A DNA stretch of 63,395 bases, filler included, from Dimorphilus gyrociliatus (Eukaryota > Animalia > Annelida), in the NCBI GenBank assembly GCA_904063045.1. It is 4 parts of 4 records of this genome, joined end to end, with 100 filler letters (N's around TTAATTAATTAA, not from the genome) between each part and the next. Parts side by side here need not be neighbours in the genome. Positions count along the whole stretch, not along the records: positions 1 to 24,564 come from CAJFCJ010000163.1; 3 more parts are not named here. One strand, given 5' to 3'. Positions within the stretch are counted from its first letter, which is position 1; the number at the start of each line of letters is the position of its first letter. This document shows positions 1 through 23,841 of the stretch, one piece after another. The notes beneath the pieces are model-generated. The model had not been told where the DNA came from and ran no database searches. It worked only from the letters and a program-made list of their open reading frames with translations. The position numbers and the translations under genes were made by a program.

Positions 1-104
1 TCTTACAACTTGTTAATTTTTGATTAAAATCAGCATTTTGAAGAATTTTAATACATAAAAAAGGTCAAATCAGTAATGTTAAATTTTCCAAATAGTTTCT
101 TTTT

Positions 105-1716
105 TTATTGAATATACTCGCTTCCCAAAAGCTCTTTAAACTTTTCCCTTATTTCACGACATTCCTCTTTATCAACTCCTTTATAATAGACTCTTAGTCT
201 AATTTCTTGAAAATTCTCAGGTAAAAATTTACTAACTCTTTCTTTTTTAAGTTTAAAAGGTTTGTCTGGTTCAGATTTTTTATAGAAAAGGAATTTTTCA
301 ACTGGATTCATATTTTTCATATCTGGAGCAAAATTGAATATGGTTTTGTATTTTGTAAGTAATTCTTTTTTATCTTCTAAATGAAAAGTTAAGATTTCAT
401 CTACTTCTTTCATTTTATCATCATCGCTTACTTCAACAATACACCTGTAAAGTTTCCTTTGATGGATTCTCCTTAAAAGTTGTTGGGCATCTTTCAAATT
501 GTCGTCAGTAGAATAAAGTATTCTTGAAAATATCTCATCAGTAAATTGATTAAAAGCGTCAACATTTTGGCATATTTCACCAAGTTTTACTTCTTCAATT
601 TCTCCTTCTTCATTCTTTATTTTCAATTGAAAATTATCCGTTGCCATGATTAAAGCGTCATACATCCTAAAGAAGAGGGATTGGGGTATTATTCATTGAA
701 AATTGTATTCATTACACTCACATTAACGCTATAGCTTTGCAAGTTTTATGCTGATAAGCTCTCTCATGTAGCTGTAATCTTGTATGGAATAATTCATAAA
801 TGCACTTTGCCTCCTTAATAAAGAAAAACTGGTAAAACTAAGAATATTTTACTTAAGAATAAAATATTATACTTTTTCTCTTAAAGATATTTTAAAATTT
901 TTATCATCTTTATCTTCGGAAACTTTTGCGAATTGAATAAAACGAGAATGATCAAATGATGATCTAATTCCAAGATGATAAGAATCCCTTGCAATGTAAT
1001 CAAACCTATCAACATCTACTCCACTTTCCTTATTCCATATAATTTCATAGAGGAATCTGTAATGACAATTTTGTGTTCAAATTTTCAAATTCTTGACATA
1101 CTAATTAACTTTACTTTCTATTTCTAAATTTCACATCAGTAAATTCTCCAGTTTTTTTACCTAAAATCAAATCTCTAAGAAATTCTCTATCCTTCTCTTG
1201 AAATTGTTCTTTTTCGAATTCTTGTTGTAAATTATTTTCTTGTATGATTTGATCAAATATTTTTACTGCTAATTCCTTTTCATCCATATTGAAGTCACGT
1301 CTAAATTTCTCTCGAAAATCAGCAAGTAGAGGTGCATTTGCCAAATTTCTGCAAAGACCTCCCAAAGACACTAGAAGTATATCTTTTTCATCGAACCATT
1401 TAACGTCAGTTGTTTTAAGCGCTCTAAGCAGTTTAGTTGCTAAATAGCATGTTCCTAAACTATGTTCGAAACTGGTATGAGTAGCAGATGGATAAACAAA
1501 ATGACAAGGTCCGAGTTGTTTAATATAACGCAAACGTTGAAATTGAGGCGTGTCAATGACTTTGATAAGTAGAGGATGGAATTCTAAATTTTTGTATATT
1601 ATCTTCGATAGATTTATATATTAAACAATAAAAAAATATACAAACCCATGTGACCATGAACAGCATCATTAAAAACTTTCTTTCCATCTCCAAAATGGAT
1701 TGACAATCGTTTTTTA
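105..1716 (-). CDS. SAMHD1: SAMHD1-like HD-domain protein without SAM domain, predicted catalytically dead; exons about 1646-1716, 1115-1583, 873-1056, 722-813, 105-666
   Basis: Spliced translation KVFNDAVHGHM/EFHPLLIKVIDTPQFQRLRYIKQLG...FEHSLG...FLYEIIWNKESGVDVDRFDYIARDSYHLG...ELFHTRLQLHERAYQHK...RLRVYYK is colinear with SAMHD1. Four in-phase GT-AG introns of 55-62 bp. The start codon is not resolved. Confidence 0.9.
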
Positions 1717-1822
1717 ATTATATATTTTATTTATATATCTCATTGTTTTCAACAAATAATTTGACCTCTTTTTTTATAACACTGCTGATAATAATAATCA
1801 TATTTATCTATCAAAAAAAATA

Positions 1823-1830
1823 TCACGTGA
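1823..1830. promoter_or_regulatory. TCACGTGA E-box palindrome upstream of the SAMHD1-like gene (also at 11008-11015 and 23982-23989)
   Basis: Exact 8-mer in GC-poor intergenic DNA; two of the three copies lie just 5' of a gene. Function is inferred only. Confidence 0.3.
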
Positions 1831-2008
1831 CCTGAATAATTTTCATAAATGTATTTCTTTGTTTTATTAATACAGCAAATGGGAGAATGTTTTCTTTGGC
1901 TAAAAGCATTATTTATAATGAATAGCATTTCTGAGTATATATCATTAATGATAGTTTATATCTTCCTCTCTCTTTCAGTTGAAGAAAATAGAAAATTTAA
2001 ATTTGAAA

Positions 2009-2916
2009 ATGAATAGAACAAACATAACTGGTATAGTTGAATTTGGAGAAATAGAATATATACTACTATTAACATTGTATTTTAGTCTCTTCTCTTTGGG
2101 AATATTACTCAATACTCTTATACTATTGATTATTTTAAAAAATAGACAGATCATTAAATCAATTGTAATATTTATTCCAGCAATAACCATTGCAGATATT
2201 TGTATTTTAATCTGGAATATTGCTGAATCAATTATAAGGGTATCAGTTGATCTGGAAAGTATACAACCAGTTTTATGTATTTTAACATATTTGTTAAAAG
2301 TAATTTTTTATGTTCAATCCCAAATTTATTTATTATTTTGTTTTATTTATAGATTTATTATGATTAAATATCCTTTACATTATGATAGATATTTCACTAA
2401 TTGCAGATCATTTTTTACTATTTTTCTTATTATTCTATTCTCATTTATCTTTTGTCTTTTTCCATGTTATATTCCAATGTTTGGCTATAGAAAATATGCA
2501 ATTTGTCAAGGTTATATGGTTTATAAAAATGAATATTTTTTTATATATCAAACTATTTTCCTTCCAAATATATTTGGAGCTTTAGTTCTACATTCAAAAC
2601 TTTTGAAATTGGCTAAAAACATGCAAATGATATACAAAAACAAACAAATAGGACTAAAAATATCTCCAAATCCTCTAAAGCAACTTTAATACAATTAGTC
2701 CTAATGGCTTCTCTTTGGATGTTATATTCTTTAACATTTGTTATATATTTCTACTATCCAACTGCAACGACAATAAAAATTGTAAACAGTGCAAATATTA
2801 TAATTGTACTTCAATCTGTAATTAACCCTATAATAGCAATAATTGGAAATTCTTCAATTAAACACTCCATCTATAATCTCTTTAAACAAAATAGAGTGAC
2901 ATCCAGAAATATTTAA
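2009..2916 (+). CDS. Rhodopsin-like (class A) GPCR with one frameshift at A-run 2615-2619
   Basis: Seven hydrophobic segments, N-terminal N-x-T sequon, YRFIMIKYPLHY (DRY region) and INPII (NPxxY-like). Adding one A joins the two ORFs as LAKKHANDIQKQ...KATLIQLVLMASLW. Confidence 0.75.
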
Positions 2917-3478
2917 TCAATTTTCTAAGGTAAAGAATCTCAATAGAATGTTTTGGCTTTCAAATTTTTTACCCACATTTTCAGAGTTCAGCTTTCAAAA
3001 AAAGTCTTGTAAAATTCTACTTTAATGTCATTGACCTCAACTAGAGTTTGGATAAATATAGAAGTATTGTAGGATATACTTTGAATATTCAATTATCAAA
3101 AATTCTATGCTGTTCAATGATTAACTTTGTACAATGAAAGCAGAAAATTTACATATCTTTAAATATTTTTGATTAAAGCAAGGAGATTTCAATGGCAAAA
3201 GAAAGTAGGTCATACTCTTGAAATAGTTGAAGTTTGTAGATTCAATTAAATTTAACTGTTTTTGGATAAAATCATCTGGCAGTATATTAAAGAATGCTTT
3301 GAATGTATATTTAATAAGTTTAGAGAATTTATGATTAATTAATATCTGGCAGTTATTGACTAATAAACAAAGAATGTTAAATGGGAGCAGGAGAAACTTT
3401 TCCCACATGATAAACTCAGGAACACTTTTCTTCTTCCAATATCTATGTTAAATTAATATTGATTATTTGGAATTTTAT

Positions 3479-4189
3479 TCAGCAACTGGCTATAAAAAAA
3501 TATGTTGGAACACTCATGACAAACTTTCCGTACGATGATACTTTGAAGCCAACTTCTTCTACAATATTTACAAGTTTGTCTGAATCAATGCAATAATGAG
3601 CAAATGTTTTTTCCCCTACTTGATAATTTTGCTGTTTTACAGCTCCGTAATCGTATAATACGCCACCTGGATTCAATTTATTGTATACATTTTTTAACGA
3701 CTTCATCAAATCTTCCTCTGTTTTACAAGCAGACAGCAACACGAAATTCATGGAGATTACATCATACTTACTATCGTCATTTGGTATTATTTGATGATTG
3801 AGCAAATCCGACTGTGAAATTTTCTTAACACTTTTCAATGCATTTTCATTCATTTCGTTAATATCACGACCTTCTAAAGCTGAAACATACTGAACCAAAG
3901 TTCTTATGTTGTCTAGGTCATCTACAGTTTTCCATTTTTTCAAGCAGTCGATATTAACATCAGAGAAGTCGGATAATGTAATGTCATCGAATTTGATACT
4001 CGCTGAAAAAATTCCAATAGGTGAAGGACCACTCCCAATTTCCAAATATTTACCACTTTTTGTCAAACTCTTTATAAATCTATGAAGTTGAAATAAATTT
4101 GCGAAATTCTCTATATCAGGTTGTCTCCAATTGTTTATAAAATTTTCAGGCCATTCTTCATTGTTATAATCTTCTCTAAATGATGTCAT
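3479..4189 (-). CDS. NNMT/PNMT/TEMT-family SAM-dependent methyltransferase
   Basis: LEIGSGPSPIGIFSAS, ITLSDFSDVN..CLKKW, YDVISMNFVL, LNPGGVL and YQVGEKTF motifs. Confidence 0.85.
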   Translation of the reverse strand: MTSFREDYNNEEWPENFINNWRQPDIENFANLFQLHRFIKSLTKSGKYLEIGSGPSPIGIFSASIKFDDITLSDFSDVNIDCLKKWKTVDDLDNIRTLVQYVSALEGRDINEMNENALKSVKKISQSDLLNHQIIPNDDSKYDVISMNFVLLSACKTEEDLMKSLKNVYNKLNPGGVLYDYGAVKQQNYQVGEKTFAHYCIDSDKLVNIVEEVGFKVSSYGKFVMSVPTYFFIASC

Positions 4190-5553: not shown

Positions 5554-7468
5554 TTATTCCAACTCAGAAACATAGAACAAAGCGAACGAAGTTAATTTAA
5601 TATTATTTTCACTGTAGATAGATTGCAATAATTCAACTGCAACAGATTGTCCTTGTTGCAGTTGTATTAAACCGCCTCTACTGACTGTATCGTATGACGT
5701 ATGAATTGTTACTTGACGCCATAATATTAATCTTATATTAAAATTAACAGTTATATAGACAATTCCAAAACGTTGTGGATATAATCCAATAGAGACGTCG
5801 GCATAGTAGAGTCCAGTTTTTGGTACTTTGTACGAACGATCATTCGCACTCCATGATGAAGTTGTGTCAATTGATATATCTTCAAATAATATTCTCCTTC
5901 TAACTACGTTATTAACGCTTTTTTGTTTTATAGGCAAAAAATATAGGCCTATTTTGGGATGTATCCAATTGGAAACCTGTTAAATAAGTTTCCAAATAGT
6001 TTGTTGACCTCGATTCACCTTCCAATAGTTTTAAACCAATATTATCGCCAGCGTTTAATTGGATAATAAATCCTCTGGACGCTTGATCAAAGGCGTTAAG
6101 GGCTCTATGATTTCTTATAATAGATAATTCGGATTTGTTGTTACGATTGTTAATGTCCAGCGTTAACCACGCCTTTTCTTTAGCATTGAAGCCTATACCA
6201 ATTGTTTATATAGTATAGACCGCTGGTCGAAATTCTTAACTGTCTTTTATCGGCTGTTGGCACAACTCCTCTTAACGTTACAACTCTTTCAAACGGTAAT
6301 AAACCAGTAGTCCCGTTTGATGATGTAACTCTACCAACAAAAAAACCATTGTTTGTCTCATAACGAAACGTAGTCCACGACATATGTTGACCGGAAGTTG
6401 AACTTGCTATTGGAGTAAGAAAATCATTGTAAATGTATGGATTAAATAGAGGCGTAAGTGAAAATAATCCAGATCTAGCTGATATATCCGATGTAGCTGA
6501 TATAGAAGTTTGTACAGTTAACCTTGAAAGGGCAATGTCAACACCAAAATCTTTTCATTATTAGATTAGCTGAGTGTGAATTTCTTGTTGAAATTGATAT
6601 TGATGTAAAGAAAAAATCCTTGTTGTTCAACATTCAATGAATTTGTTGTTGTGTTAAAAAAATTTCCTTGTTCTGTTGAAATTACTTGCCATTTTACTCT
6701 TCCCTCTGGAATTCTCGTATTTCTTACTATACTTACCATAGACGATTGAGAATTTGCCACGTTACAAGGAGGATTTAAACATATATCAACGTCAACCGAA
6801 CTTCCGGGACAATCGTCACCTCCGTTCATTGGAGGTGGACTATCGCAATTTCTTGTACGAATTCGAAGACCATCTCCGCAGGATGGTTCGCAAGAACTCC
6901 AATCCGACCATGTTGACCAACCTCCAGATATTGGACATTTAGCTTCGTCAGGCGTAACGCAAATTCTAGTATTGCAATCTCTTACATTCAATGATGGACT
7001 AAAATAATATCCATCCGGACATTGCTGTGGCCATGAAACTCCATTATAACAATGGTAATACTGTCTACAATCATTTTCATTAGGCAATGTAACATTTTGT
7101 CTATTTGCACAAATGGAATTTTTTAAAAAACAAGGTTCCTCCAAAGATTCTTTAGCGTTAATACCTTCCAAACATTCTGAACTGTGAACATCAGGTTTTA
7201 ATATTAATGATGAATTGCCTCCAGGACAATCGGCTTCGGCTGGTTCAACGCACAATGAATATTCGCAATTGGTTAATGAAACAGTGAAAAATAGTCCTGG
7301 TGGACATTGTTGAGGATAGGCAACGCCATTTATACAATGATAATATACACCGCAAAACGAAGGATCAGCAAAAGCTCCATCAATTGGTTTCAAATTGGAA
7401 TTAAGTGGACAATTAAATTGCGATAGACCGGAAGCGGCCAATGAAGATACTAAATGGAATAGTGTCAT
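5554..7468 (-). CDS. Secreted multidomain protein: signal peptide, 2x chitin-binding peritrophin-A (CBM14), TSP1, 3x C1q-like; four +1 homopolymer frameshifts
   Basis: CGVYYHCINGVAYPQQCPPGLFF and CRQYYHCYNGVSWPQQCPDGYYF (CBM14); WSTWSDWSSCEPSCGDGLRIRTRNC (TSP1); three C1q-like blocks with GFF/GLYY and ARSG/ASRG/VSRG motifs. One ORF results from removing single bases at 6611-6616, 6552-6555, 6205-6207 and 5919-5924. Confidence 0.8.
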
Positions 7469-9552
7469 TAATATATTATAATTTATACAAATATAAATTT
7501 CTACACACCAATTATACAGAGATTTCTTAAAATGTTCATTTTAGCTGAAAAGTAATTCAAATATTCCCAATGCTATATATACACTCTTTTAATGGAGGTC
7601 AACGTTCTATATTTCGTAATAATTAATTACACAAAGATGTCAAGCAGAGGTAAATCTAATCACTATTGATATTGGGATAAGATAAAGAAGAAGAGATTCT
7701 AATCTTGATAAAATAGACCCAAAAAAAAGACAATACAGAACTTCAAAGAATCACTTATAGGCCTACATTTCGATAAAATGACTACGTGGAGAGATATTCT
7801 TTGTGTCTATAAGGCATTTGCTTTAATGATGTTTTCATATGGATTTTGTAATAAGTGTTATTTCATAAATAATTCTTCTCAACTCGTAATTATCTACTTT
7901 ACCAGTTTACATTATAAAAACTCAATTATTTAATATGATAATATATTCTTCTATTGTTCATCCTTTTTTTCTCTCATTTTCTCTCACAATGTTTTCTCAT
8001 TATGAATAATGCATTTTTTAATAATTCATATTTCAATTTACCTTTTACTATTCTATAAAAATCAACATCGTTTTTATCAAATAAAGTCATTCCTGGAGAA
8101 TTTTCTGTTGTAAAGAAGCACTTTTTGTCTGAAACTTCATAATTGAAACCCCTTTTTTTTGTTTTTTTTTAAAAAAAATTCTATAATAGAAATATTAAAA
8201 GAAAAAATTTCAAATATTCAAATACTTATGTGCAATTACTCAACACACTACAATATTGTTTACACATGTCTAGATCTCCCTTAAATATTTCTTCATAAGG
8301 AATGAGTAGTTCTTTTCCCTTAATCCTTTCAAATACTTTTACTAAGTTGAGGAAAAAAAAAAGTCATTTTTTTTTAAAAAAAAACAAAAAAACAAAAAAA
8401 GTAACCTTATCTTTATCTTACCTTGTGGAATATTTGCTAGAATATTTTTATTGTTGGTTTTTTTTTAAAAAAAAAAAGAACATTTACTTTAAAATAAATT
8501 AAAAAAAAAAACAAATTATCTTACGACAACTGGTTTTTTTGTCATAATAGTCGGTTTCTTGACTATTCTGAAGTACTTGCTCTTTTGAATATAATTTACA
8601 TTTTAATTCAATTCATTTATAGGAAAATGACCTAGAAAATGAATATTTTCAAAAAAAGAGAAGAATAATTAATCAATCATTTACTTGCAAATAGGATGAA
8701 GATCACAATGTTCTCTACATTCCGTCAAATTAAAAGATTTAAATTTTATCAATCGTTCTCCAGAAGCTTTCTTACTCAAATGAGTAGAATAGGAGCAAGA
8801 AGCTTAAATTAATGATTGATTGTAGAAATGCAAAAAGAAAAAGAGAAAATTAATCCTTTTTACCACATGTAACATTTTCCATTGACAGTGTGAGTAGTGT
8901 CAACACTATTGGAAAGAATATTAAAGATTGAAAATAAATAGGAAAAGTTATCTTTTGAAGATATGCCATCTTTGATATAGAAATGAAAAAGTGAAGGTTT
9001 ATAAGCTGTATAAATATTTAGATTGATTATTATTGAAGTTATTTGTTTTTTGGTCCAATTGTTAAGGGGAAGAAGACAAGTTTTGAATAATTTACTTAGT
9101 AGAATAAAGTTGAAGGAATGTAAATATTATGTCTGACAATAGGAAATTTCTAAACGTTTACAAAATTGGACATTAATTTTAAATGATACTTTTAATCATC
9201 TATCAATTCTTTAGTTATCTTAATTAACAATTCCACGCCTACCAATATAACGACTACAGGCCTATGCAATGGCAGCGAACAGAAATATGTTTCTAGAGTT
9301 GTTGAAGATAATTCTAGTGAATTTGAAATGGACAATATTTTCTATATCCAAAGTAAATATGGGCGTTTTAAAACACAGAAGATAAGATAAATTAAAACTT
9401 CCCTAAACACTTACTTTATTTCATTGTTTTTAGCTCATCTCTTCCTAAATTGTTCTACTTTCCCAAAAATTAAAAAAACCTTCTGCCAAGATATAAAAGG
9501 CCAATGAAAATTGAATAAATTATACACTCCGAATAGAGAGAAAACTGGTACA

Positions 9553-10318
9553 ATGACTCTTCAGCTTTTCTGTTTTAGTAAGAAACTAAAAATTGATTTT
9601 GTTTTATTTTTTTAAAAGGAAAAGTTTAAAGTTTGCTTTTGTTTTAGCGTTAATGCTGTTTTATGTCGAATCGTCACAATCGACAGCAACAGCAACACCA
9701 GCAGCATCAGATGTCCACTTTATTACAACATTCAAAATAGCAAACAATAGTTTGGATAAAACGGTTAAAAATTGCGAAAATATAGTTTGGCGATGTAATG
9801 CGAGATTAAGATTCAATTTGGAGAGAATGATGGAAACTGGTTATAATGCTCATACATTTTGCAGTGTATTAAAGGAACAGGTACAGTGTGGACATAGCGC
9901 TATTTCAGATGGTTGTCCTATTATAAATATGGAACAAGCAGAGTCATTTCAACAGTCGCATTGTTCAACAAGTAAGATTGTTTTCGTGACAAAATTGAAC
10001 AAATGATAAATTTTTTATTGTACAGAATGTCAAAATGAACTGCAAAAGTGTGACGGTATGGCAAACTCGTGCAAATTGTTCTTTTGTAGAGTTAGGGGTG
10101 AAGTAGCCTGCGGTGCCTACAACAATCATATAAGAAATGTCGATGGGCATAATAGACGAATTTGTAAGGCAATTAACAAACACTTGAAAACTGCTATTGA
10201 GTTTATTTTCACAGGTGGTGACCCAGAAAACTCGGCATCATCTTTAAAAACTCATTCCTTTATCTTTTTCAATTTCATATTCATATTTCAATTTTTGATT
10301 AAAAATTTCCTTTTGTAA
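9553..10318 (+). CDS. Cys-rich secreted, probably GPI-anchored surface protein of unknown family; exons about 9553-9577, 9648-9971, 10026-10166, 10214-10318
   Basis: In-phase GT-AG introns, signal peptide MTLQLFCFTLMLFYVES, about 13 Cys, and a C-terminal NSASSL followed by a hydrophobic tail. Confidence 0.65.
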
Positions 10319-10589
10319 TTTTCTTTTCAAAAATCGATAAGAAAAGTAAACACTTGTCAACTATTTGAATATTCATTTATCAATTTCCTTTTAGTCATCT
10401 AGACAATTCGCAAACAGAAAAATTCACTTTCTCCTCTTTAATTCTATACTTGACCTCTATTTTCTTCTTCTTCTCTATGCTACTCAATACAGTCTGCAAG
10501 ATTATTCAGTGCTCAATTATCAACTCGACATGCAATGGTGAAGAGTTCAAAGCCTTATTTCAACAAAGGTTTATTTCTTTTTTCAGATG

Positions 10590-10805
10590 ACATTGTCGGA
10601 TGATGGGAGTGGAACGCTATTGATTTACACACTGTATAAATTTGCCTCTAACATCCAATCATCGCTTTGCGGTTGGTGAATTGTCTGATAGCAGGATGTT
10701 ACAAAGTCTAATTGTCAAGTTCCTTGTGTTTAGGAAGACCAATTTTGGAATTATGATTTGGCCCAAATTTGATCAGCCATTTTAGTAAAACATTTCTTCC
10801 TTATA
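10590..10805 (+). repeat. Diverged copy of the 636-bp leader repeat
   Basis: acatccaatcatc...caggatgttacaaag...ttatgatttggcc matches 12740-12870. Confidence 0.6.
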
Positions 10806-11089
10806 GTCTAATCAAATTGTAAATGCTGAGGATTGAAAAGTATCTGTTTTTACCAATAAAACAACAAAATCATTGCATTCTGCTTAAAATGTTGAATTGC
10901 ATGAAAAATACAGTTGACAAACATGTAATTATATTCAATCATTTATAATTTTCATAATTTTATAGAATTTACAATTAATTCATAAATACAAAATTTTCTA
11001 TTGATTATCACGTGACTAAAGAGCAGTCAAGGTTATATATATATATATATTGTTCTCTCAATCATGGAGTCTATTTTAAGAATTCAATC

Positions 11090-12372
11090 ATGGAAGATGG
11101 CTTTTTGAACATTTCAACGCTTTTAGTTTTTATACTTTTCATTGATTTTCAATGTTATAGTAAGTTTGTTGTATTTTTTTAAAAGAAAAGAATAGGCCTA
11201 ATTAACAATACTATCTTCCTCCTTTTTCAGACACGGTTAAACTTTCGCAGACGGTTTGTGAAAATCGTTCAATAAACATTATTTGTCCTGTTAAGCAGGT
11301 AATCTCCATAAATAACGTAATTTATGGAAGACAAAAAGGAGATTTGAAGACGTGTCATAGGCATTTTTTGAGCAAAAGTCCAATTTATGAAAGAATATTG
11401 GGAAATGTTTGCAGAGCAAAGAATGGAGATGAAATAGTAAGTAACAACTGCAATGGCAAAAGATTTTGTTTAGTTAAAGCTAAGAATAAAGTATTTGGGG
11501 ATCCATGCATTGGAATTCATAAATATTTAACAATAAACTATGAATGTATTCGAGGTAAACAATGCAATTTTTTCCAACTATAAACTCAAACATTTCATTT
11601 TTTAGACGCAAATAGAAAAGTTGCATGCGAACATAAAACATTGAATTTGTTGTGTCCATTTGGAAAAGTCATTAAAATAAAATCTGCTTTCTATGGAAGA
11701 CAAAAGAAAGATTTTACGATTTGCAAATTCAAGAATTTTTCGAAAGTAAAAAAGAGAATTAATGAGAAAAGTTGCAATTCTTCTAAATCATATTTGAAAG
11801 TATCTCAGTTGTGTAACAAGAGACAAAGTTGTAGTGTTAGGGCAAAAAATTCCGTCTTTGGAGATCCTTGTGTTGGAATTTTTAAATATTTACAAGTTGA
11901 GTATGTTTGTGAACTTCCAGTACCAATAACAACAACAACAACAACAACTATGATACCAACTTCTATCCCACAAAATTATCTTCATTGTAAGTTTCAAATT
12001 TAAAATTTCAACTAATGTTCAACATTTTCTGTTTGCTTTTCAAGATAAAATTCCAATTACTGTTTGTCGACACTTTTTGTTCATTTAAATTGTCCGCTCG
12101 GATCAAAAATTGTTATTAATAATGTTTTCCATGGAAATGAAGACAAGAAGAGGAAAAATGAAGAGGAAAATTGCTCTCATCAATTTTTAAAAGAATTTTA
12201 TTCTAAAAACGATATTCATCTATGCGAATCGATAGATGAAACGAAAATGATAGCTGAAAGATGCAATCAGAGACAAACGTGCGCCATACTAGCAGATCGT
12301 TATTCCACTCAATATTCCTGTTGTAATCATTTCAACTACTTTACAATTATCTATTCCTGTTTCAAAATTTAA
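11090..12372 (+). CDS. Rhamnose/galactose-binding SUEL-type lectin with three domains and a Thr-rich linker
   Basis: Signal exon 11090-11159; domains CENRSINIICP...YGR...FGDPCIGIHKYLTINYEC and CEHKTLNLLCP...YGR...FGDPCVGIFKYLQVEYVC; a divergent third domain needs a 1-bp correction at 12047-12050. Confidence 0.85.
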
Positions 12373-12416
12373 CAATAATAACAGAAAGTAGGTCACTAAC
12401 AAAAAAATAACAATAC

Positions 12417-13052
12417 TGTACTGCTCTTGCTGGCAAAATCTATGCGTTTGCAAGTTATAACAATACTGGTTCTACTCAAACCTTTAAACAAATGTTTAAA
12501 TTAAAACGGTTTATTCGCAATAATAATACTTAAGCAAGTAACGATATGAGAGTTCGATAGCAGAGTAGATAGTTTGTAAAAGCAGGTTGCCAAATTACCA
12601 AACTGTCTTCTAATGTTGAGGAGTAGATGGATGGTTCCAGTGGAGGTTGTTTCCAGATGACTTTCCCAGGTCCTTGGGTCCAGATGGAAGCTGCATGCCA
12701 AATGAGAATAATGAGGATTTATATACTTTGAGGTTTGTCTCTGACATCCAATCATCACTTTACAGTTGCCGAAATGTGTAGTTCATATTTATCTTTAGTA
12801 ACAGGATGTTACAAGGTTCAACATTTAGGAAGGTTAATTGAATTATAACTTGGCCACACTTTAGGCAAGTTAATTAAATTATAACTTGGCCAAACCTTTA
12901 TTGGTAATTAAAGATGAGCCTTCAAGCTGACTAATCAGACTTATGTTTGGCCAATGTTATAGCATTTTCTTGCGTAGGTTTTAAGATGTACATGTATATG
13001 TTGCATAAAATAATAGAGTTCAAGCATGTAAAATATAACCAAAGTTGTACAA
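12417..13052 (+). repeat. 636-bp leader segment, near-identical to 47977-48612 and its mirror 55609-56245
   Basis: Same ends (tgtactgctc...gttgtacaa) and same length in two contigs; contains a duplicated ttaattRaattataacttggcca motif and a splice-acceptor-like ttttcttgcgtag. Confidence 0.9.
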
Positions 13053-16000
13053 TGCATTGACCTATCTAACTGTGGGTTGGGATCAGATATTGGTAATACT
13101 GCTGGTAAAGCAATTGGAAAGCTAAGTGACCTTACTGTGTTACAACTCTCAAATAATCCTCTGGGAACTGAAGTAGGAAAAAATATATTTGAAAATATTA
13201 AAGGAACTTGCACAAAATTAATCCAGATTGCTTTTGACAACTGTGGATTTGGGTCTGAAATTGGCTCAATTGTTGGTGAAGCAATAGGTAAACAAACTCA
13301 ACTATCACTCCTGTATTTGCAACATAATGAAATTGGAACTATAGTCGGAAAGTATATTTTTGAAAATATTAAATTTAACTGCACAAAATTGAGCAAAATT
13401 GCTTTTGACAACTGTGGATTTGATTCTGCAATTGGTCCAATAGTTGGGGAAGCAATAGGTAAACAAACTCAACTAACAGAACTTTTTCTGCAAGATAATA
13501 AATTTGGAACTATAGTTGGAAAGCATATTTTTGAAAATATTAAATTTAACTGTACACATTTGTCAACAATTTGTCTGAATAATTGTGGATTACAATCAGA
13601 AATTGGTCCAATAGTTGGTGAAGTAATTGGTAAGCAAACAGAGCTTACTGGAATATCTTTGACAAAAAATCCAATTGGAACAGAAGTTGGCATTGGAATC
13701 TTTGAAAACATTAAAAGAAATTGCACAAAATTATCAAGTATTTGCTTAAATAACTGTGGAATAGAATCACAAATTGGCCTGGTAATTGGTGAAGCAATAG
13801 GCAAGCAAAAACATCTCACTGCACTGGATCTGTCAAACAATCCACTTGGAACAGAAGTGGGAAAAAATTTAATTGAAAATCTTAAAGCAAATTGCACAAG
13901 ATTATCAGAAATATATCTAAACAACTGTGGATTTGATTCAAATATTGGACCCGCTATTGGTGAAGCAATAGGCAAGCAAAAACAATTAAGTGTCCTTGAC
14001 ATTGGAAACAATGCAGTGGGATCTGTAGTTGGAAGAAATATATTTGAAAACATTAAAGATAATTGTAAGCAAATTAATTAAAATAAATCTAATAAAATGT
14101 GATCTTGAATCAAATATTGGTGAAGCTATTGTTGAAGCAATTGGAAAGCAAAAACAGCTCTCTCAACTGAATCTTTCAGACAATCCACTTGGGACCGAAG
14201 TGGGAAAAAATTTATTTGAAAATATCAAAACAAATTGCACCAGATTATCAGAAATATATCTAAACAACTGTAGATTTGATTCAAATATTGGATGTACTAT
14301 TGCTGAAGCAATAGGTAAACTCAAAGGACTCAAAATATTGACACTTCAAGGTAATTTACTTGGATCAGACATTGGAAAAAATATTTTTGAAAATATTAAA
14401 GCAAATTGTAGACAATTTTTTGGAATTGATTTTGAGAATTGTGGTTTTGACTCAAATGTAGGTTCAGTTGTTGGTGAAGCAATTGGAGAGCAAGAAAGGT
14501 TGTCTAAGTTATATCTAGGTCACAACCATTTTGGCTCAGAAGTTGGAAAACTTATTTTTGAAAATATTGAAAAGAATTGCAGACAATTAACTATTTTGTC
14601 TTTAGCCAATTGTGCATTTGAGCCAAACATTGGTAGCATTATAGGAAAAGCTATTGGGAAGCTTAAAGAACTTATCTACCTGAATCTGAATGATAATCAG
14701 TTTGGATATGAAGCTGGGAAAAGTATTTTTGAAAATATCAAAAATTCTTGTATAAAATTGACACAGTTGGAGCTTGGTAATTGTGGATTTAATTCAGATA
14801 TTGGTTGCGTTATAGGAGAGGCAATTGGAAAACAAACTAAACTCACTACATTGTATCTTCAAAATAATCAACTTGGAACAGAAGTGGGCAGACATATTTT
14901 TGAAAATATAAAGTTGAATTGCACAGAATTAACAACAATTTGTTTTGTTTCATGTGAGTTTGCACCAAATATTGGTTGTGGTATAGGAGATGCAGTTGGG
15001 AAACAAAAGAAACTTACAAGATTGTACCTTTATAATAATATATTGGGATCAGTAGTTGCGATGAGTATTTTTGAAAATATTAAGTTGAATTGCACACAAT
15101 TAACTTTAATTAATCTTTCTTTTTGTGAACTAGAATCAAACATTGGTTTTGTCATTGGAGATGCAATTGGAAAACAAAAAGGACTTAAATGGTTGAATCT
15201 TGAAGGTAATAAATTGGGATCAGAAGTTGGAAAGAGTATCTTTGAAAATATTAAGTTGAATTGCTCAGATTTAAGTGCAATCAGTCTTGCTTCTTGTGAA
15301 CTAGAATCAAACATTGGTTGCGTTATTGGAGATGCAATTGGACGACAAACCAACCTTACCACATTGCATCTGTATAATAATTCACTTGGAACAGAAGTAG
15401 GCAGACATTTTTTTGAAAATATTAAGTTGAATTGCAATGGGTTAACTACAATTAATCTGGCTTCTTGTGCATTTGAATCAAACATTGGCTGTGTCATTGG
15501 AGATGCAATTGGAAAACAAAAAGGACTTAAATGGTTGAATCTTGAAGGTAATAAATTGGGATCAGAAGTTGGAAAGAGTATCTTTGAAAATATTAAGTTG
15601 AATTGCTCAGATTTAAGTACAATCAATCTTGCTTCTTGTGAACTAGAATCAAACATTGGCTGTGTCATTGGAGATGCAATTGGAAAACAAACTGGACTCC
15701 AATGGTTGAAGCTTGAAAATAATAAAATTGGTTCAGAAGTTGGAAAGAGTATATTTGAAAATATTAAGTTGAATTGTAGGTATTTAATAACAATTAGTTT
15801 TGCTTCTTGTGAACTAGAATCAAACATTGGTTGTGTTATTGGAGATGCAATTGGAAAACAGAGAGAACTTACTTATTTGGACATTTCACATAATAATTTG
15901 GGATCAGAAGTTGGAAGATATATCTTTGAAAATATTAAAGAAAATTGCACTAAATTATCCATATTAAAACTAGAAAACTGTAACTTTAAATCAGATATTG

Positions 16001-16350
16001 GTTCTGTTGTTGGTGAGGCAATTGGTAAACAAATAAGTCTAACTGCATTAAGTCTTCAAGATAATCCTCTTGAAACCAAAGTTGGAAAAAGTATCTTTGA
16101 GAATATTAAGATAAACTGCAGGAATTTGTCAAAAATTTTATTAAGGAAATGTAACTTTGATTCAAGCATTAGTTTTCTTGCGCTGGAAGCAAGTCAAAAA
16201 CAGAATATGAATGTAGTTTTATCTCTGGATGACAGCTTAATGAAAAGTATAAATGAAAAGCATACCACTGAAGGCGTATCATCAAAGAAATTGCATTCTA
16301 AAGATAGTTTGAAGAAAAAGAATCGAACAAAAATATGCCTACTGTTGTGA
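13053..16350 (+). CDS. Intronless ribonuclease-inhibitor-type LRR protein with about 37 alternating 28/29-aa repeats and a C-terminal polybasic + CLLL CaaX; +1 frameshift at 14067-14068; 5' junction disrupted
   Basis: 57-aa (171-bp) period alternating xxNC and xxNN/HN/DN repeats; 18 Asn-type and 19 Cys-type repeats counted; ends KKKNRTKICLLL*. Confidence 0.85.
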
Positions 16351-17917: not shown

Positions 17918-19888
17918 ATGATTAATGTTGTATTTTTTCATAAAAATATATCTATATCTTTTAAAAGAGTTCATTCTCTGTATCTATTGATTTTCGTATT
18001 ATTTTTATTCTCTTTTAAACAACATAATACTGGCTCTACTATTAGATATGAAATAACAGCTAAGACTAATGCTACTCAAAAGAAAACTTTTCAAATTGTT
18101 AAACTTTTAGCTGAGAAACCGGATTGTGAGAGACCAAAGATGGAATTATGGCCAAATGGTGTTAATAAAATAAATCTAAAATTCAAGCCTGTCATCTGTG
18201 ATCCTCCTTCATCGGAATGGTTTGTTATTAGTAATAGAAAAATATTATTTACAACAACTGCAAAGAAGTATATTTCGAATAATAGCGTTTCTTGTGAATT
18301 ACATGTTCTTGATGTTAATGAGTATTTAGAAAGAAACCTTAGATTTAAGGGTAGATTGTATAATATACAAACTTATAAGAATATCATAAATGGAATGAAA
18401 GTTCCTTCTGATGTCTTCTCAATTCATTGCTCTAAAAGCAGTGAATCAAAATATATATTCGAAAATATATATTTAACGATTAAACCTCATAAAAATATTA
18501 CTTTAAATCCACCGACACCTAATCCATCATCTGGTGAGCCCAAATGGAATATTTTAATTTGCTGTTTCGATTCTTTATCAAGACTCTCCTGGCAAAGATT
18601 TCTACCTAAAACAATTAAAGCATTTAAGGATATTGGAGGAGTTTGGTTTGATAAATCTAACATTATCGATTTTGGAACGCTAGGATCATTTATACCTCTT
18701 CTAACAGGAAAATTTCAGCGTGAACTCCACAAGGCTCTTCGTGGTCAGAAAGGAGCCAGAAGTATTGATGATTATCCATGGATTTGGGAAGAGTTAAAAC
18801 ATCAAAACTATTCTACACTCTTAGCAGATTATAGTACTTTCAATTTTAAATTACTGGGATTTAATACAACTCCTACTCATCACTATGGAAGACCATTTTT
18901 CTTGGCTGCTATGAAAAATAGGAGAAAGCATAAGAGATATTGTCTAAAATCAAAGATTAGACTAGAAATACTGCAAAATTATATTGAAGAATTTTGGAAT
19001 ACTTATAGTAAGAATCCAAAAATGGCTCTTGCGAATTACGAAGAAATGTCACATGACAGTTTTGGCGATATCAGGGCAGCAGATAAAATACAAGCTGATT
19101 GGCTGAAAAGAATGTTAGAATCTAAAAGATTGGAAAATACAATATTTATTTTAATGTCTGATCATGGCGGAAGATTTGGAGAGCTCAGAAAAATGAAACA
19201 AGCTGAATGGGAAATGCTTAATCCCTATTTTGGTGTAAGACTGCCTGACAGTTTTAAACAACTACATCCAATAGAATCAACATACTTAGAAAGCAATAGA
19301 GATGTTTTAATAACTACTTTAGATATCCATGCTACATTTAGCCATATCATCAGATTTGCTACAAATGATTCAGTTAAACTAGAAGTTCATAGTCGGTCTA
19401 AGAGCCTACTGACACTGCTACCAAAAAATCGAACATGCTCAGCTGCAAATGTTCAAAAGAGATTCTGTCTCTGCCATACATATAAAAAAGTTAATGTATC
19501 TGACACTGTTGTTCTCAATGTAACTAAAGTTCTTTTAAGAAACATGACAGATTCCTTGAAACCAATAAGACAACTTTGCAAACCTTTGCAGTTGAAAAGC
19601 ATACTTGAAGCATATAAAGTTGATAGGTTTGTTCCAGGAAAAAATCTTTTAAACACCATCAATAAAGTTTACAAAGTCAGTTTCTTAGTAGATTTCTTCT
19701 ATGGACAATATGAATCATATGTTTCTGTGACATTTGATATCAGCCATACTGTTATATTAAATATAGAAATACAAGAATTAAATAGAATGGATATGTATGG
19801 AGATCAGGCTAACTGCATAGAAAGAGATCATCCTTGGTTAGCTCCCTATTGTTATTGCTTAAATTATAAAAGGAACACAATTGTCTAA
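17918..19888 (+). CDS. DUF229-family (alkaline phosphatase/sulfatase-like) type II membrane protein
   Basis: N-terminal TM, NILICCFDSLSRLSWQRFLPKT, EMSHD, ILMSDHGGRFG, RTCSAANV..RFCLC, and C-terminal YCYC. Confidence 0.85.
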   Translation: MINVVFFHKNISISFKRVHSLYLLIFVLFLFSFKQHNTGSTIRYEITAKTNATQKKTFQIVKLLAEKPDCERPKMELWPNGVNKINLKFKPVICDPPSSEWFVISNRKILFTTTAKKYISNNSVSCELHVLDVNEYLERNLRFKGRLYNIQTYKNIINGMKVPSDVFSIHCSKSSESKYIFENIYLTIKPHKNITLNPPTPNPSSGEPKWNILICCFDSLSRLSWQRFLPKTIKAFKDIGGVWFDKSNIIDFGTLGSFIPLLTGKFQRELHKALRGQKGARSIDDYPWIWEELKHQNYSTLLADYSTFNFKLLGFNTTPTHHYGRPFFLAAMKNRRKHKRYCLKSKIRLEILQNYIEEFWNTYSKNPKMALANYEEMSHDSFGDIRAADKIQADWLKRMLESKRLENTIFILMSDHGGRFGELRKMKQAEWEMLNPYFGVRLPDSFKQLHPIESTYLESNRDVLITTLDIHATFSHIIRFATNDSVKLEVHSRSKSLLTLLPKNRTCSAANVQKRFCLCHTYKKVNVSDTVVLNVTKVLLRNMTDSLKPIRQLCKPLQLKSILEAYKVDRFVPGKNLLNTINKVYKVSFLVDFFYGQYESYVSVTFDISHTVILNIEIQELNRMDMYGDQANCIERDHPWLAPYCYCLNYKRNTIV

Positions 19889-21606
19889 TTTTTTTTACAG
19901 CTATACTAAAAAATATGTTAAAGTGTAAGGTTTTGATGATTGGATTCTTTTCAAGAATAAATATCTCACTGTCTGATTTTAAACACTAAAACTTACATTC
20001 CATATTTCACTACTTGTAAATGAGTCACTAGTTCTGAACTCAGAAGTTTATTCAAAAGAACTATTTTTCTATCTGCTATTGGAGAGACTGTATTACTTTC
20101 TTTTATGTTATAGCCTATAGTCTAGTCCAAAAAAATTGACAATTGTATTTTCTAATATTCCTTTCCTTTCTCTATTCAAGCCTGCCATTTTCTTGGAAGT
20201 AGGTTGATATTGTTCTGATAAAAAGGAGAATGGCTTTCTCCTTAGAAAATCTTTGATTCAAATTATCATAATGGACCCCTCTGATATGGTCCTTCAATCT
20301 CCCAAAAAGATAATAGTCAGTATTGGAAGATTATTGAAAGGCAAACGTCACTGCTTATTTCCCTAAAAGAATTTGTGGGAAAAAGATATGTGGGAAATAG
20401 TGACATTTAGAAATATTTTATGCTTTGATATCAGTGCCATAAAATGTTGTCAATGTAATTTTACTGTCTAGTTACGTCTTAAGTTATGAATAAAACTAGG
20501 CAATTTAATGTTTTCAAAGATAGTTTTATTCAATGCAGATACGAATTATTTAAATATATAAAAAAGTGGTTTCTATTTTCTATCCTATACTGCAACTACA
20601 TCTTTAAGGACCACATGCCATTTTTTAACAAGGTTCAGAAATGTATACTTCCAGTAGATCTGGAATATTCTCTTTAACTCCACTTTTCAAACCTCAAATA
20701 GAACAAGCTTTCAACTCTATGGCTGTTGGTAGCAAAAATGGTTATCAAACTTCCTGGTCTGGTTTTCTTTGTGAATCTAATAGTTTTTTTTTATGAACAT
20801 TATTGAATGCTGATAGAAGTGAATTGGCAGTGTCAGCTGCAGGTTGGTATTTTTTCAAATTTGGAACTGGTTACCCATCCCGGGACAAATGAGTAGTCAG
20901 CCTAACAATAAATAATGATACAGCATAAATGGAAAGATCTCTAGCCAAGGGTCATACCTCTAAAGAAAATAGTCAAGGCTCTAGAGGAGCAATTGCTCGA
21001 TGAAATGAAAAGTCCAGCATTTTATGCCTATAGAACAACAAATTTAATGACATTGTCAAGAGTAAAATTTGATTTTGATCAAGTTGTTCTAGATACAAAT
21101 TCTGGTTACCAACCATAAAAAAAAACATATAAAGTGGCAATTTCCGGTTTATAATAAATTGATGTTCCTGTTGGAATATGGGGATTTTCACAATTTGTAA
21201 TATATATAATAGTAAATAGTGAACAAAAGCTAGGTATGCAAAGACTGACTGCTCAAACAGGTTATCAGACAATGAGCAGAGACATAATGGACATAATTTT
21301 AATAGTTTAGAATGGCACTTATTTTTTGTTCCATAAGACAATACATTATTCAGATATCCAGTCAATATTTGCAATATATCGTCTGCTCTACAGAATTTGT
21401 AAGCGGCGCGGGGGCGAGAGCCACTCTACAACACCTTTAGGCCTATTCGCGATAGAAAAAACACCTGTCAAAAATCATTCTAATTTAACAATGTCCATAT
21501 TAAGGATAGGAGAGTGACAAAAAAAAACATATCGAAAGTTTTATTGTGGAATTCTTGGATCATTGAGATTTTAATAAAGTATAAATCTTTATTTCAAATA
21601 GACAAA

Positions 21607-23841
21607 ATGGCGGTTGATTCGTTAAAGGTGGCTTGTTTAAAAATAATTCGAAAAAATTTAGCATACCTTGCAAAAATTTGCCAAGACAAAGGATTAGCTT
21701 TACCGCAAACAGTTGGAGAAATGATACTAGAATTTTCAAATATCAATGATTCGCATTCATTCATCGAAAACGAAATGGAATTTTTCAAATTTAAAAGAAT
21801 AAGTTTATCAAAAATATCTTTAAATTGGAAAAAATTTAAAAATATAATAAATTTTGAATTTTTAAAAAATCAACCAATCAAATCATTAGAATTGGATGGA
21901 AGTTTTAATTTGAATAAATTGTATATAAATGAAAATATTGAAAGGATATCAACAACTTTTAATCCATATTTCAATTTGCAATTTTTAATAAAATTTCTAC
22001 CTCAATGTACTCAACTTCAGTCATTTGAAATTGATTTGAACACGTGTTCAAAATTTAAAATGGATAATCTTTTTAGAAATATTATTAAAGGTTTAAGGAG
22101 ATCATCGTCCGAATTGAAAGAATTAATTTTACTCAATTATGAAATAACGATAATAGAGGAAGAAGAGCAACTCAATCAATTATTGGTAAAATGTTCCAAA
22201 TTAGAGACTTTCCACCTAAATAAACTTCCTTTGACAGATTGCCAAATTCTTTTTTCTGGATTATCAACATTAAATCATACATTAACAAATTTAAATCTTC
22301 AATTAGATTATAAACAACTGGATAATCTTACAGAATTCTTGGGAAGGTGCTCAAAAATTCAAATATTTCAACTTTGTTTTATCCAATCCGTATTGTTCAC
22401 AGAACCATGGCTACCGCAAATTGTTGATAGTTTGCAATTATCATTGGGAAATTTCAAAGAATTTGTATTGAAAACTAATTTGTCCTTGACCTCTGATGAT
22501 GAGAAAAGTTTGGGAAATTTCTTAGAAAATGCTCCAAATATTGAAAAATTCCATTTAGAAAAGTCACTCAATTCAGGAGATGGGTTTTTCTATTCTAGAA
22601 ATAATGGACAAAGCGATATCAGTCCCATCTATACTGGTCTGAAAGCTTCGCAAAACACCTTGAAAGAAATCTATTTGACTGAAAGTCTTAAAACAAATTT
22701 AATAATTAGGGAATTTGGATTAACATTGCAGTATTGCGTAAATCTTTCTACAATATTTGTATCATTTTGCGGTGTTATGCTAAAAGATGAATTTAAGGAA
22801 ATCTGCAATGGTTTAGAAGCATGTTCTGAGAGCCTAGAGCGTATTACATTTGAACATATTTTTCTAAGAATAGAACAGATTAAATGGTTGAGTAGTGCTT
22901 GTGAAAATTGTTTTCGCCTCTCTTCATTCCAGTTGTACGAAAGATCATCCAGATTAAAAAATGAATTCCCCTCATTTGTTGGAGTAGGGAATTTCTTCCA
23001 GTTAGATGTTCTAGGTGGAAGTCAATTTGCTGCAAATGGAGGTTTTGAAATATTTTTAACCAGTTTTATAACATTTAAACCAATGCTCAGCAATCTTCAA
23101 TTGGAAAACTTTGTGCTTACCCCAGCAAAAGCTGAGAGATTGGGTTTTTATTTACAGTCTTGCAGACATCTGTCTCATCTCAACCTAAAAGGAAATTTAA
23201 ATATGGGAAATGGATTACTTAAAATACTGAATGCATTAAAATCTAGGTCAGAAATAATAAAAAGTCTCAATTTTGAAGAGTGCCATTTGACCAGAGAGCA
23301 AGGCTATTGGTTGAGTAATTTTCTAAATGATTGTACAAACTTGGAATATTTAAATTTGAATTATAACAGATTTTTAAAAACAGCAATGGCAAACATTTTA
23401 AATTCAGTGAAAATGTGCAAAAATCTTTGTTATTTATCTCTTATCAACTGTTGTTTAGAGAGCGATGATGATATATCTTCTTTGATAAATTTACTCCAAA
23501 ATCTTACAAATGTTGATAAACTTTATCTATCATTTGATAACCTGAAAGAAGAACAATTTGAAGATATCTCTGTTGGATTGAAATGCTCAAAACAAAGCTT
23601 ACAAGTTCTTTTTCTAGAATTTCCACAAAAATTTAGTTTAAGTAAAAATTCTGTAGAAAATTTTTGTCAAACATTAAAAAAATTAACATCACTGCAAAAA
23701 TTTAATATAAAATATAATCAAATAGAAAATATCACTTTGCAGTGTTCATTGCAGTATCTAAGGTCAGCTTTTAAAAATTCTTCATTTACGATTAATGAAG
23801 AAAATATTGTATGTTTTGTAAATGAATTTCCAAATTACTGA
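21607..23841 (+). CDS. Intronless LRR protein with N-terminal BC-box and Cul2-box (ZYG11/ZER1/PRAME-like architecture)
   Basis: MAVDSLKVACLKII fits (S/T/P)LxxxCxxx(I/V/L/A); LPQTVGEMIL resembles the Cul2 box; followed by RI-type LRRs (LSHLNLKGN, LEYLNLNYN). Confidence 0.7.
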   Translation: MAVDSLKVACLKIIRKNLAYLAKICQDKGLALPQTVGEMILEFSNINDSHSFIENEMEFFKFKRISLSKISLNWKKFKNIINFEFLKNQPIKSLELDGSFNLNKLYINENIERISTTFNPYFNLQFLIKFLPQCTQLQSFEIDLNTCSKFKMDNLFRNIIKGLRRSSSELKELILLNYEITIIEEEEQLNQLLVKCSKLETFHLNKLPLTDCQILFSGLSTLNHTLTNLNLQLDYKQLDNLTEFLGRCSKIQIFQLCFIQSVLFTEPWLPQIVDSLQLSLGNFKEFVLKTNLSLTSDDEKSLGNFLENAPNIEKFHLEKSLNSGDGFFYSRNNGQSDISPIYTGLKASQNTLKEIYLTESLKTNLIIREFGLTLQYCVNLSTIFVSFCGVMLKDEFKEICNGLEACSESLERITFEHIFLRIEQIKWLSSACENCFRLSSFQLYERSSRLKNEFPSFVGVGNFFQLDVLGGSQFAANGGFEIFLTSFITFKPMLSNLQLENFVLTPAKAERLGFYLQSCRHLSHLNLKGNLNMGNGLLKILNALKSRSEIIKSLNFEECHLTREQGYWLSNFLNDCTNLEYLNLNYNRFLKTAMANILNSVKMCKNLCYLSLINCCLESDDDISSLINLLQNLTNVDKLYLSFDNLKEEQFEDISVGLKCSKQSLQVLFLEFPQKFSLSKNSVENFCQTLKKLTSLQKFNIKYNQIENITLQCSLQYLRSAFKNSSFTINEENIVCFVNEFPNY

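Follow-up and report, generated by a model that had tools for sequence, protein, structure and literature searches.

It has long been argued that SAMHD1 has functions independent of the hydrolysis of deoxynucleoside triphosphates (dNTPs), the candidates being nucleic-acid binding, DNA repair, replication-fork roles and immune signalling, and the argument has been carried mostly by engineered mutants in which the HD dyad is changed to RN or to AA. Does nature make such proteins and, if it does, are they put to use? The question is raised by a gene at the left end of a 63,395-nucleotide stretch of DNA from the annelid Dimorphilus gyrociliatus (four parts joined with filler; the whole stretch is called the window hereafter), in which an initial annotation had read a catalytically dead SAMHD1 with Arg-Asn in place of the His-Asp (HD) dyad and with its allosteric sites kept. 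The D. gyrociliatus genome is among the smallest of animals and is otherwise marked by gene loss. The evidence assembled below suggests that the gene product is probably a pseudo-dNTPase kept by selection, with a role either in regulation or in binding nucleotides or nucleic acid without catalysis.

The Arg-Asn gene and its catalytic centre

Minus-strand translation of window positions 1-2000, together with inspection of the junctions, delineated a five-exon SAMHD1-like gene with GT..AG introns at 105-1687. An exhaustive protein search with exon 2 identified it as DgyrCDS14884 (CAD5126856.1, UniProt A0A7I8WF79; 449 amino acids), 100% identical across the exon and present in public databases on contig CAJFCJ010000095.1 of assembly GCA_904063045.1, without a functional name. 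The spliced coding sequence of the window equals this protein exactly once a base missing from exon 1 is restored (see below). The gene is referred to here as the RN copy. The paper describing the D. gyrociliatus genome (73.8 Mb, median intron 66 bp; PMC7854359) does not mention it. The window is AT-rich (27-34% GC), its genes are compact and the introns of DgyrCDS14884 measure 55-62 nt. The parts of the gene are as follows (sequencing runs X1 to X3 are described in the next section).

1688-1779, minus strand: minimum 5' untranslated region (UTR); an X3 contig spans 1646-1779, and a 9-codon upstream open reading frame (ORF) begins at 1743
1646-1687, minus strand: exon 1, coding part, opened by the ATG at 1685-1687; a homopolymer at 1680/1681 is one A short in the window (T on the plus strand), a frame shift confined to the window
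1584-1645, minus strand: intron 1, GT..AG, 62 nt; its removal yields HGHM-E-FHPLL, matching both the family and the deposited protein
1115-1583, minus strand: exon 2, exactly the interval singled out initially; N-terminal HD lobe with allosteric-1 residues, HTSFEH and the degenerate HD motif
1528-1554, minus strand: guanine-recognising D25, Q30 and R33 of allosteric site 1 (human D137, Q142, R145), all kept
1462-1479, minus strand: HTSFEH motif (human HNRFEH); R164 replaced by S52, metal ligand H167 kept as H55
1345-1350, minus strand: AGA AAT, R93-N94, in place of the metal-binding dyad H206-D207
1312-1344, minus strand: LANAPLLADFR replacing LGHGPFSHMFD; H210N, H215A and, in the ungapped alignment only, D218R
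1057-1114, minus strand: intron 2, 58 nt; joint 1056/1115 in X2 and X3 contigs (CT..AC on the plus strand)
873-1056, minus strand: exon 3; D187 (human D311) kept at 1008-1010
814-872, minus strand: intron 3, 59 nt; joint between 812 or 813 and 872 or 873 in X2 and X3 contigs
722-813, minus strand: exon 4, with the RAYQHK motif; H254-K255 (human H376-K377) at 745-750; N358 replaced by C236
667-721, minus strand: intron 4, 55 nt; one X2 contig stops exactly at 666
105-666, minus strand: exon 5, C-lobe; R333 (human R451) at 456-458, K393 (human K523) at 276-278, stop codon at 105-107
1-104, minus strand: 3' UTR, at least in part; X1, X2 and X3 contigs cover 1-200

Exon 3 also holds the equivalents of K312R, Y315, D319, D330, R333, R352 and K354 (human numbering). 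The protein begins three residues ahead of the K116 equivalent, and its end lies close to that of human residue 583; it thus has neither the N-terminal SAM domain nor the C-terminal regulatory tail (T592 region) of vertebrate SAMHD1, and the same is true of its D. gyrociliatus paralogues, which make it one of three such genes in the genome. An AlphaFold2 model built with an 80-sequence alignment reached a mean predicted local distance difference test score (pLDDT) of 90.9 and a predicted template modelling score (pTM) of 0.91, confidence dipping only in a single loop and directly behind the RN motif. Compared with SAMHD1 structures in Foldseek, the model gave template modelling (TM) scores of 0.88-0.90, the inactive human and mouse HD/RN mutants engineered for crystallography (4bzb, 4tnp and 6brk among them) having the same HD-lobe and C-lobe fold. 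Alignments with SAMHD1 proteins from human and other species have E about 1e-88 and take in 94-99% of the length at 38-42% identity; for the human protein, whose residues at allosteric sites 1 and 2 (A1 and A2) are kept, the figures are 38% and 97%. Sequence matches and the confident model together assign DgyrCDS14884, over its full length, to the SAMHD1-type (YdhJ/COG1078-like) fold of HD N-lobe plus C-lobe.

Residues were mapped by HMMER alignment to solved SAMHD1 chains and by MAFFT alignments numbered on the 626-residue Pongo SAMHD1; positions are given in human numbering. Plus-strand positions 1345-1350 read ATTTCT; on the minus strand, which is the coding one, this gives AGA AAT (Arg-Asn), with TGC (Cys) as the preceding codon. 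The GLC-RN motif proposed for this site is confirmed, with the minus strand as its coding strand, as is the replacement of HNRFEH by HTSFEH in both kinds of alignment. Among all PDB chains, the best HMMER match is the engineered HD-to-RN mutant of mouse SAMHD1, 6brk, which ranks above wild type because the identical Arg-Asn pair occupies the HD dyad (GLCRNL in both). In human SAMHD1, H206R/D207N blocks metal coordination and abolishes activity (PMC7045340), in agreement with its description in the initial annotation as an inactivating pair.

The damage extends beyond the dyad. Two of the four ligands of the HD metal-binding quartet are kept (H167 and D311) and two are lost (H206R and D207N), and auxiliary residues for catalysis or triphosphate binding are altered as well: R164S, H210N, H215A, H233K/E and K312R. 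These five changes, together with N358C, distinguish the natural protein from the engineered HD/RN mutant. All but one of the substitutions listed at the outset are thereby borne out; the exception, D218, is replaced in most alignments but depends on which is used, being Arg in an ungapped one, while a gapped alignment can put an Asp, two residues upstream, at 218. The Pfam HD model (PF01966) has no match in DgyrCDS14884 and matches its paralogue DgyrCDS6560. SAMHD1 D311A is inactive, and H210A and H233A disrupt catalysis (PMC7045340); because of the human H206R/D207N, H210A and H233A data, DgyrCDS14884 is predicted to have lost dNTP hydrolysis.

Might it still be an enzyme, with changed chemistry or substrate, that relies on H167 and D311 (plus N207), or else on basic residues it has gained (R93, R105, Lys/Glu at 233 and R188)? 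Q149, L150, H167, D311, Y315, D319, R366, Y374 and Q375 of the catalytic pocket are all kept, so that the pocket is probably still shaped for a nucleotide. However, the H206R/D207N change is sufficient to abolish metal binding and activity in the human protein, every residue whose mutation was found to be disruptive at 206, 207, 210 and 233 is altered here, R164 and H215 are altered in addition, and the Pfam model fails to recognise the domain. Continued catalysis of a new kind is, in our judgement, very improbable.

The regulatory pockets are in a different state. A1 (residue roles for D137, Q142 and R145 taken from PMC7045340 and PMC7854603) keeps K116, V117, N119, D137, Q142, R145 and R451, its only change being K455R, which is also found in DgyrCDS6560 and in 24 of 219 homologues. 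A2 is identical at eight of ten positions (V156, D330, R333, R352, K354, H376, K377 and K523); F157Y, at a ninth, is as in DgyrCDS6560 and 100 of the 219 homologues. The RAYQHK motif is kept too, and the alignments uphold the whole set that had been called retained (H167, D311, D137, Q142, R145, R451 and RAYQHK). In SAMHD1, A1 binds GTP or dGTP and A2 a dNTP, in a pocket formed across three subunits that drives dimer and tetramer formation (PMC7045340); the allosteric sites also accept G-containing oligonucleotides, a function separable from dNTPase activity and dNTP depletion (PMC7854603). It is this binding pocket for GTP/dNTP activators and G-containing oligonucleotides that is preserved almost residue for residue.

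The distribution of changes was examined in an alignment of 220 family members, restricted to 82 columns whose conservation among the other 219 homologues reaches 90% or more. Of 14 catalytic columns defined from the literature, the RN copy has lost seven and the active paralogue none, whereas the eight allosteric columns are intact in both; among the remaining conserved columns, losses amount to 13/60 in the RN copy and 7/60 in the paralogue. Nine of those 13 sit inside residues 198-237, the stretch bearing the HD motif. When this segment is added to the catalytic set, the RN copy has lost 16 of 30 columns against 4 of 30 in the paralogue; outside it, the losses are 4/52 (I191F, I268L, V301I and G508A, all conservative) and 3/52, respectively. 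Identity to Pongo SAMHD1 follows the same division: 61% for the RN copy and 59% for DgyrCDS6560 over residues 113-197, 26% and 57% over 198-237, and 36% and 41% over 238-583. With the catalytic list, which was chosen beforehand, the excess of losses (7/14 vs 13/68) has p=0.035. By these counts the decay is local, and the remainder of the protein appears as constrained as in the active enzyme.

Transcripts and reliability of the sequence

Window positions 1-3000 were compared with four public sequencing runs. Run X1 yielded a 2.1-kb genomic contig (220-2350) with the introns included. In runs X2 (2017, a different species label and study) and X3 (2020), contigs match the exons with no differences and the introns are absent. 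One such X2 contig joins 1115-1581 straight to 872-1056 and then to exon 4 without a difference, and exon 5 is covered, again without differences, by an X2 contig at 243-666 and an X3 contig at 180-666. Depth in both runs collapses in intergenic DNA and in the neighbouring receptor gene. Because of the intron-less contigs and this depth profile, we infer that X2 and X3 derive from RNA and, on that understanding, that DgyrCDS14884 is spliced and expressed with an intact ORF. A loose contig end in X2, at 721, proved to be the spliced exon 4/5 junction of the paralogue DgyrCDS6560, which again indicates transcripts and shows that this gene is expressed too.

Another X2 contig end, at 722-731, reads through the exon 4/5 junction. 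Its peptide, I-A-L-M-M-Y-D-A, is that of the RN gene, although five nucleotides differ, each of them synonymously; its sequence is absent from the window and from the published-assembly loci of DgyrCDS14884 (L005) and DgyrCDS6560 (L006). Its source may be a divergent strain, or else another allele or copy of the RN-like type. In run X6, almost every difference from window 1-3000 is either C>T (153) or G>A (172), as in a methylation library made by bisulfite or enzymatic conversion, which the run resembles; it is useless for variant calling here.

The contigs also help to settle the start codon. As given, the window has no ATG in frame with exon 1, and to that extent the spliced frame, described initially as intact, is broken there by one missing A at 1680/1681. 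The extra base in the A-run is present in the published assembly, in the X1 DNA contig and in the X3 transcript contig; with it restored, the frame is intact and the ATG at 1685-1687 opens MEKKVFNDAVHGHM... (beginning MEKKVFND...). The missing base is an assembly error in the window and not biology. A start codon supplied by trans-splicing of a spliced leader or by an upstream exon was considered and rejected, the one-nucleotide assembly deletion being explanation enough.

Could the RN codons themselves be an artefact, the product of sequencing or assembly error, contamination or a mis-joined gene model? The window does carry errors: over 6.9 kb it departs from the published assembly by 12 single-base homopolymer indels, of which exon 1 has one, a pattern typical of an unpolished long-read assembly. 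Over the same 6.9 kb, however, the two assemblies show no substitution. Exon 2, RN codons included, is covered with no differences by contigs of two independent studies, and the published assembly encodes the same protein; at 1345-1350 all of them read AGA AAT. Introns, codon usage and neighbouring genes all match the host genome, and an identity of only 38% to human SAMHD1 excludes a laboratory construct. Two assemblies and two independent studies thus support the RN codons; sequencing error is not their cause, and an artefactual origin of the site is scarcely conceivable.

The indels lie at window positions 22, 860, 1081, 1680, 2614, 4810, 5551, 5669, 5919, 6202, 6552 and 6611. Several affect coding sequence, at 1680 (exon 1 of the SAMHD1-like gene), 2614 (receptor gene), and 5669 and 5919 (C1q-like ORF).

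Paralogues, evolutionary rate and possible roles

The active paralogue envisaged in the initial annotation exists in two versions. DgyrCDS6560 (452 amino acids; 51% identical to DgyrCDS14884 in a full-length search; HD intact, with a Pfam HD match) occupies 10001-11636 of its locus, and a second HD gene (467 amino acids, HD intact) lies directly upstream at 7620-9598, on a 4.6-Mb contig other than that of the RN copy. Both carry canonical HNRFEH and LCHDLGHGP(F/L)SH motifs and the full catalytic set RHHDHHHD at 164/167/206/207/210/215/233/311. On this reading of their motifs, the D. gyrociliatus genome has two active paralogues, one of them seen as transcript contigs. They share the exon structure and SAM-less architecture of the RN copy and differ from it in their catalytic set, in the Pfam match and in standing in tandem, while the RN copy is alone on another contig. 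The upstream tandem copy contains two consecutive versions of the exon 4 homologue ('...RAYxHK...'), at about 8470-8560 and 8709-8795 of the locus; the same double exon is found in a related species (locus L002, 2855-2977 and 3090-3179). The two versions look like mutually exclusive alternative exons.

The related, distinct species (Logan runs; loci L001-L004) has the same tandem pair, both members intact. The nearest match to exon 2 in a word-index search (49% identity, HD intact) is the orthologue of the active paralogue in that species; this search gave fragments only, and a word-index search with exon 5 gave no match. In maximum-likelihood (ML) trees the five dinophilid sequences form one clade (support 100/100), within which the RN copy groups with the lineage of DgyrCDS6560 and its orthologue, called g2 (support 72/97 and 93/97). 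Three topologies, placing the duplication before or after the split from the related species, are indistinguishable (approximately unbiased (AU) test, p 0.29-0.51). Between the RN copy and DgyrCDS6560, over 378 ungapped codons, the nonsynonymous divergence (dN) is 0.33-0.34 and the synonymous divergence (dS) is saturated, at 2.4 (NG86) or 3.2 (GY94); orthologous pairs between the two species also have a high dS, of at least 1.4. Since dS to its nearest paralogue is saturated, the duplicate must be old. DgyrCDS14884 is, to judge from trees and divergences, an old, dispersed duplicate of DgyrCDS6560, itself a SAM-less SAMHD1-type dNTPase of the tandem pair.

Has this duplicate been kept, or is it a functionless gene, still expressed, that lost catalysis after selection was relaxed and whose remainder has yet to decay? 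Several observations weigh against retention by selection. The terminal branch of the RN copy, at 1.45-1.80 substitutions per site, is about five times as long as that of DgyrCDS6560 (0.31-0.34), which shows either strong relaxation or adaptive change. No RN-type orthologue between 51% and 100% identity was found by the exhaustive exon 2 search or by a full-length word search, neither of which took in the related species' runs SRR23372228-31 and SRR31984834. The two active paralogues make the RN copy dispensable for dNTP hydrolysis. The strongest statistical contrast, between the catalytic set plus 198-237 and the rest (Fisher p=7e-6), uses a segment delimited after the data had been seen. In A2, N358C is an unusual change, the only one. 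As for expression, X2 and X3 are recorded as '?' and 'DNA?', and no run is on record as RNA. Finally, dS is saturated in every comparison, so that the pairwise omega of about 0.1-0.14, and a rough omega of 0.2-0.35 that is a bound only, are to be read loosely.

On the other side, in a genome of 28% GC the ORF of 449 codons is unbroken and all four introns are still spliced correctly, and dN to the nearest paralogue has reached only 0.33-0.34 while dS is saturated. A least-squares partition of dN assigns 0.25 to the RN branch and 0.10 to that of DgyrCDS6560: the nonsynonymous rate of the RN copy is about 2.6 times its sister's, yet far below the silent-site rate. Conserved columns outside the catalytic segment are kept at 48/52, compared with 49/52 in the paralogue, and no allosteric column is lost. 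The loss of catalysis is not very recent, since at least seven catalytic-site substitutions have accumulated. A gene on its way to becoming a pseudogene is therefore an unlikely description, and a selected pseudo-dNTPase, as first suggested, is the one we favour: the catalytic machinery is gone, the gene is intact and expressed, and active paralogues are present. The dN/dS values agree with it in lying well below 1, within the bounds set by saturation; for the period since catalysis was lost, the evidence of purifying selection is indirect.

The history that we propose is that an old duplicate of DgyrCDS6560 lost the metal ligands H206 and D207 along with R164, H210, H215 and H233, which serve catalysis and triphosphate binding, and would no longer hydrolyse dNTPs. 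Selection would have maintained the rest of the protein, above all the composite A1 and A2 pocket. This pocket may still bind GTP or dGTP and dNTPs, or G-containing single-stranded nucleic acid, and the protein may still form dimers or tetramers, either of its own chains or mixed with those of the two active paralogues. Its role could then be that of a regulatory subunit, or of a binder of nucleotides or nucleic acid that carries out no catalysis.

A narrower version of this proposal makes the RN copy a hetero-oligomer partner of the active paralogues, a dominant-negative or 'diluting' subunit that would bring allosteric faces but lack an active site, and so tune dNTPase output. All residues building the inter-subunit pocket from three chains are kept in the RN copy and DgyrCDS6560 alike, identity between these two proteins is 51%, and a single run yielded transcript contigs of the RN copy as well as of g2. 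Each SAMHD1 subunit owns an active site, however, so that a dead subunit need not be dominant-negative, and we regard the partnership as possible but doubtful. The results do not separate a stand-alone binder from a regulatory subunit, nor do they decide among the three roles suggested initially (sensor or scaffold, nucleic-acid binder, paralogue partner).

Natural counterparts and neighbouring features

A precedent for the architecture is ZK177.8 of Caenorhabditis elegans (PDB 6pwy), which is HD-only like DgyrCDS14884. It differs in being an active dNTPase that forms a dGTP-driven tetramer (PMC10485159), and to crystallise it in inactive form its dyad was given H-to-R and D-to-N changes, the very ones that are natural in DgyrCDS14884. 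SAM-less invertebrate homologues are therefore genuine SAMHD1-type proteins, and a SAM-less architecture is normal.

Precedents for the loss were found among the collected homologues, where other natural SAMHD1-like proteins have a degenerate dyad or degenerate catalytic histidines. They comprise a cyprinid 'YN' (Tyr-Asn) group (Chanodichthys, Cirrhinus, Rhinichthys and Carassius), an 'FN' (Phe-Asn) protein of Physella acuta, an 'RG' (Arg-Gly) protein of Batillaria, a Bulinus variant and a variant from the jellyfish Sanderia. In our collection these are P0062, P0132, P0135, P0152, P0117, P0025, P0100 and P0057, annotated merely as 'SAMHD1-like' or hypothetical. Most keep D137, Q142, R145, V156, K354 and R451, and D207N recurs among them. 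They form separate lineages in the tree, with replacement residues different from those of the RN copy, which indicates that catalytic death with allosteric retention arose repeatedly. A literature search found no paper on these degenerate copies, on the DgyrCDS gene identifiers or on a 'SAMHD1 pseudoenzyme'.

It is conceivable, though we lean somewhat against it, that SAMHD1-derived pseudoenzymes are a recurrent, undescribed class of animal proteins that drop the catalytic centre and keep the guanine-specific allosteric/oligonucleotide pocket. If they are, an ancient, selectable core function of the pocket (sensing of GTP or G-containing nucleic acid, oligomerisation) could stand alone without dNTP hydrolysis, and Dimorphilus would supply a natural separation-of-function allele for studying it. 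Nature would appear to have made and kept a mutant of the engineered type, expressed, beside two active copies in a tiny genome; with the dead copies in fish, snails and jellyfish, it offers a comparative route, and a testable protein, for isolating the non-catalytic function. A practical warning follows as well: 'SAMHD1-like' annotations include proteins unable to be dNTPases.

The neighbour of the SAMHD1-like gene, about 300 bp away and divergently transcribed, is an intronless rhodopsin-type seven-transmembrane (7TM) receptor gene (Pfam 7tm_1) at 1979-2916 on the plus strand, corresponding to 8771-9709 on the minus strand of L005. A false frameshift at 2614 interrupts this gene in the window; the published assembly has an intact 312-codon ORF there, at which the published gene list calls no gene. 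The other ORFs noted nearby are, like it, mostly intronless.

3479-4189, minus strand: NNMT/PNMT/TEMT-type methyltransferase (Pfam)
5554-5937, minus strand: C1q-domain ORF (Pfam)
6566-7468, minus strand: Cys-rich ORF, chitin-binding/TSP1-like by eye only
11641-12372, plus strand: two galactose-lectin-like ORFs, by eye only
17918-19888, plus strand: 656-amino-acid ORF
21514-23841, plus strand: ORF resembling a leucine-rich-repeat (LRR) protein, by eye only

Beyond 6924 the window and L005 are not collinear (window 6924-16000 vs L005 18400-21586). Two leucine-rich-repeat ORFs of the window, at 13077-14081 and 14029-16350, consist of RNI-like repeats of about 28 residues and have long antisense ORFs. 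They match L005 piecewise and in altered order, which indicates that the repeat array was assembled differently in the two versions.

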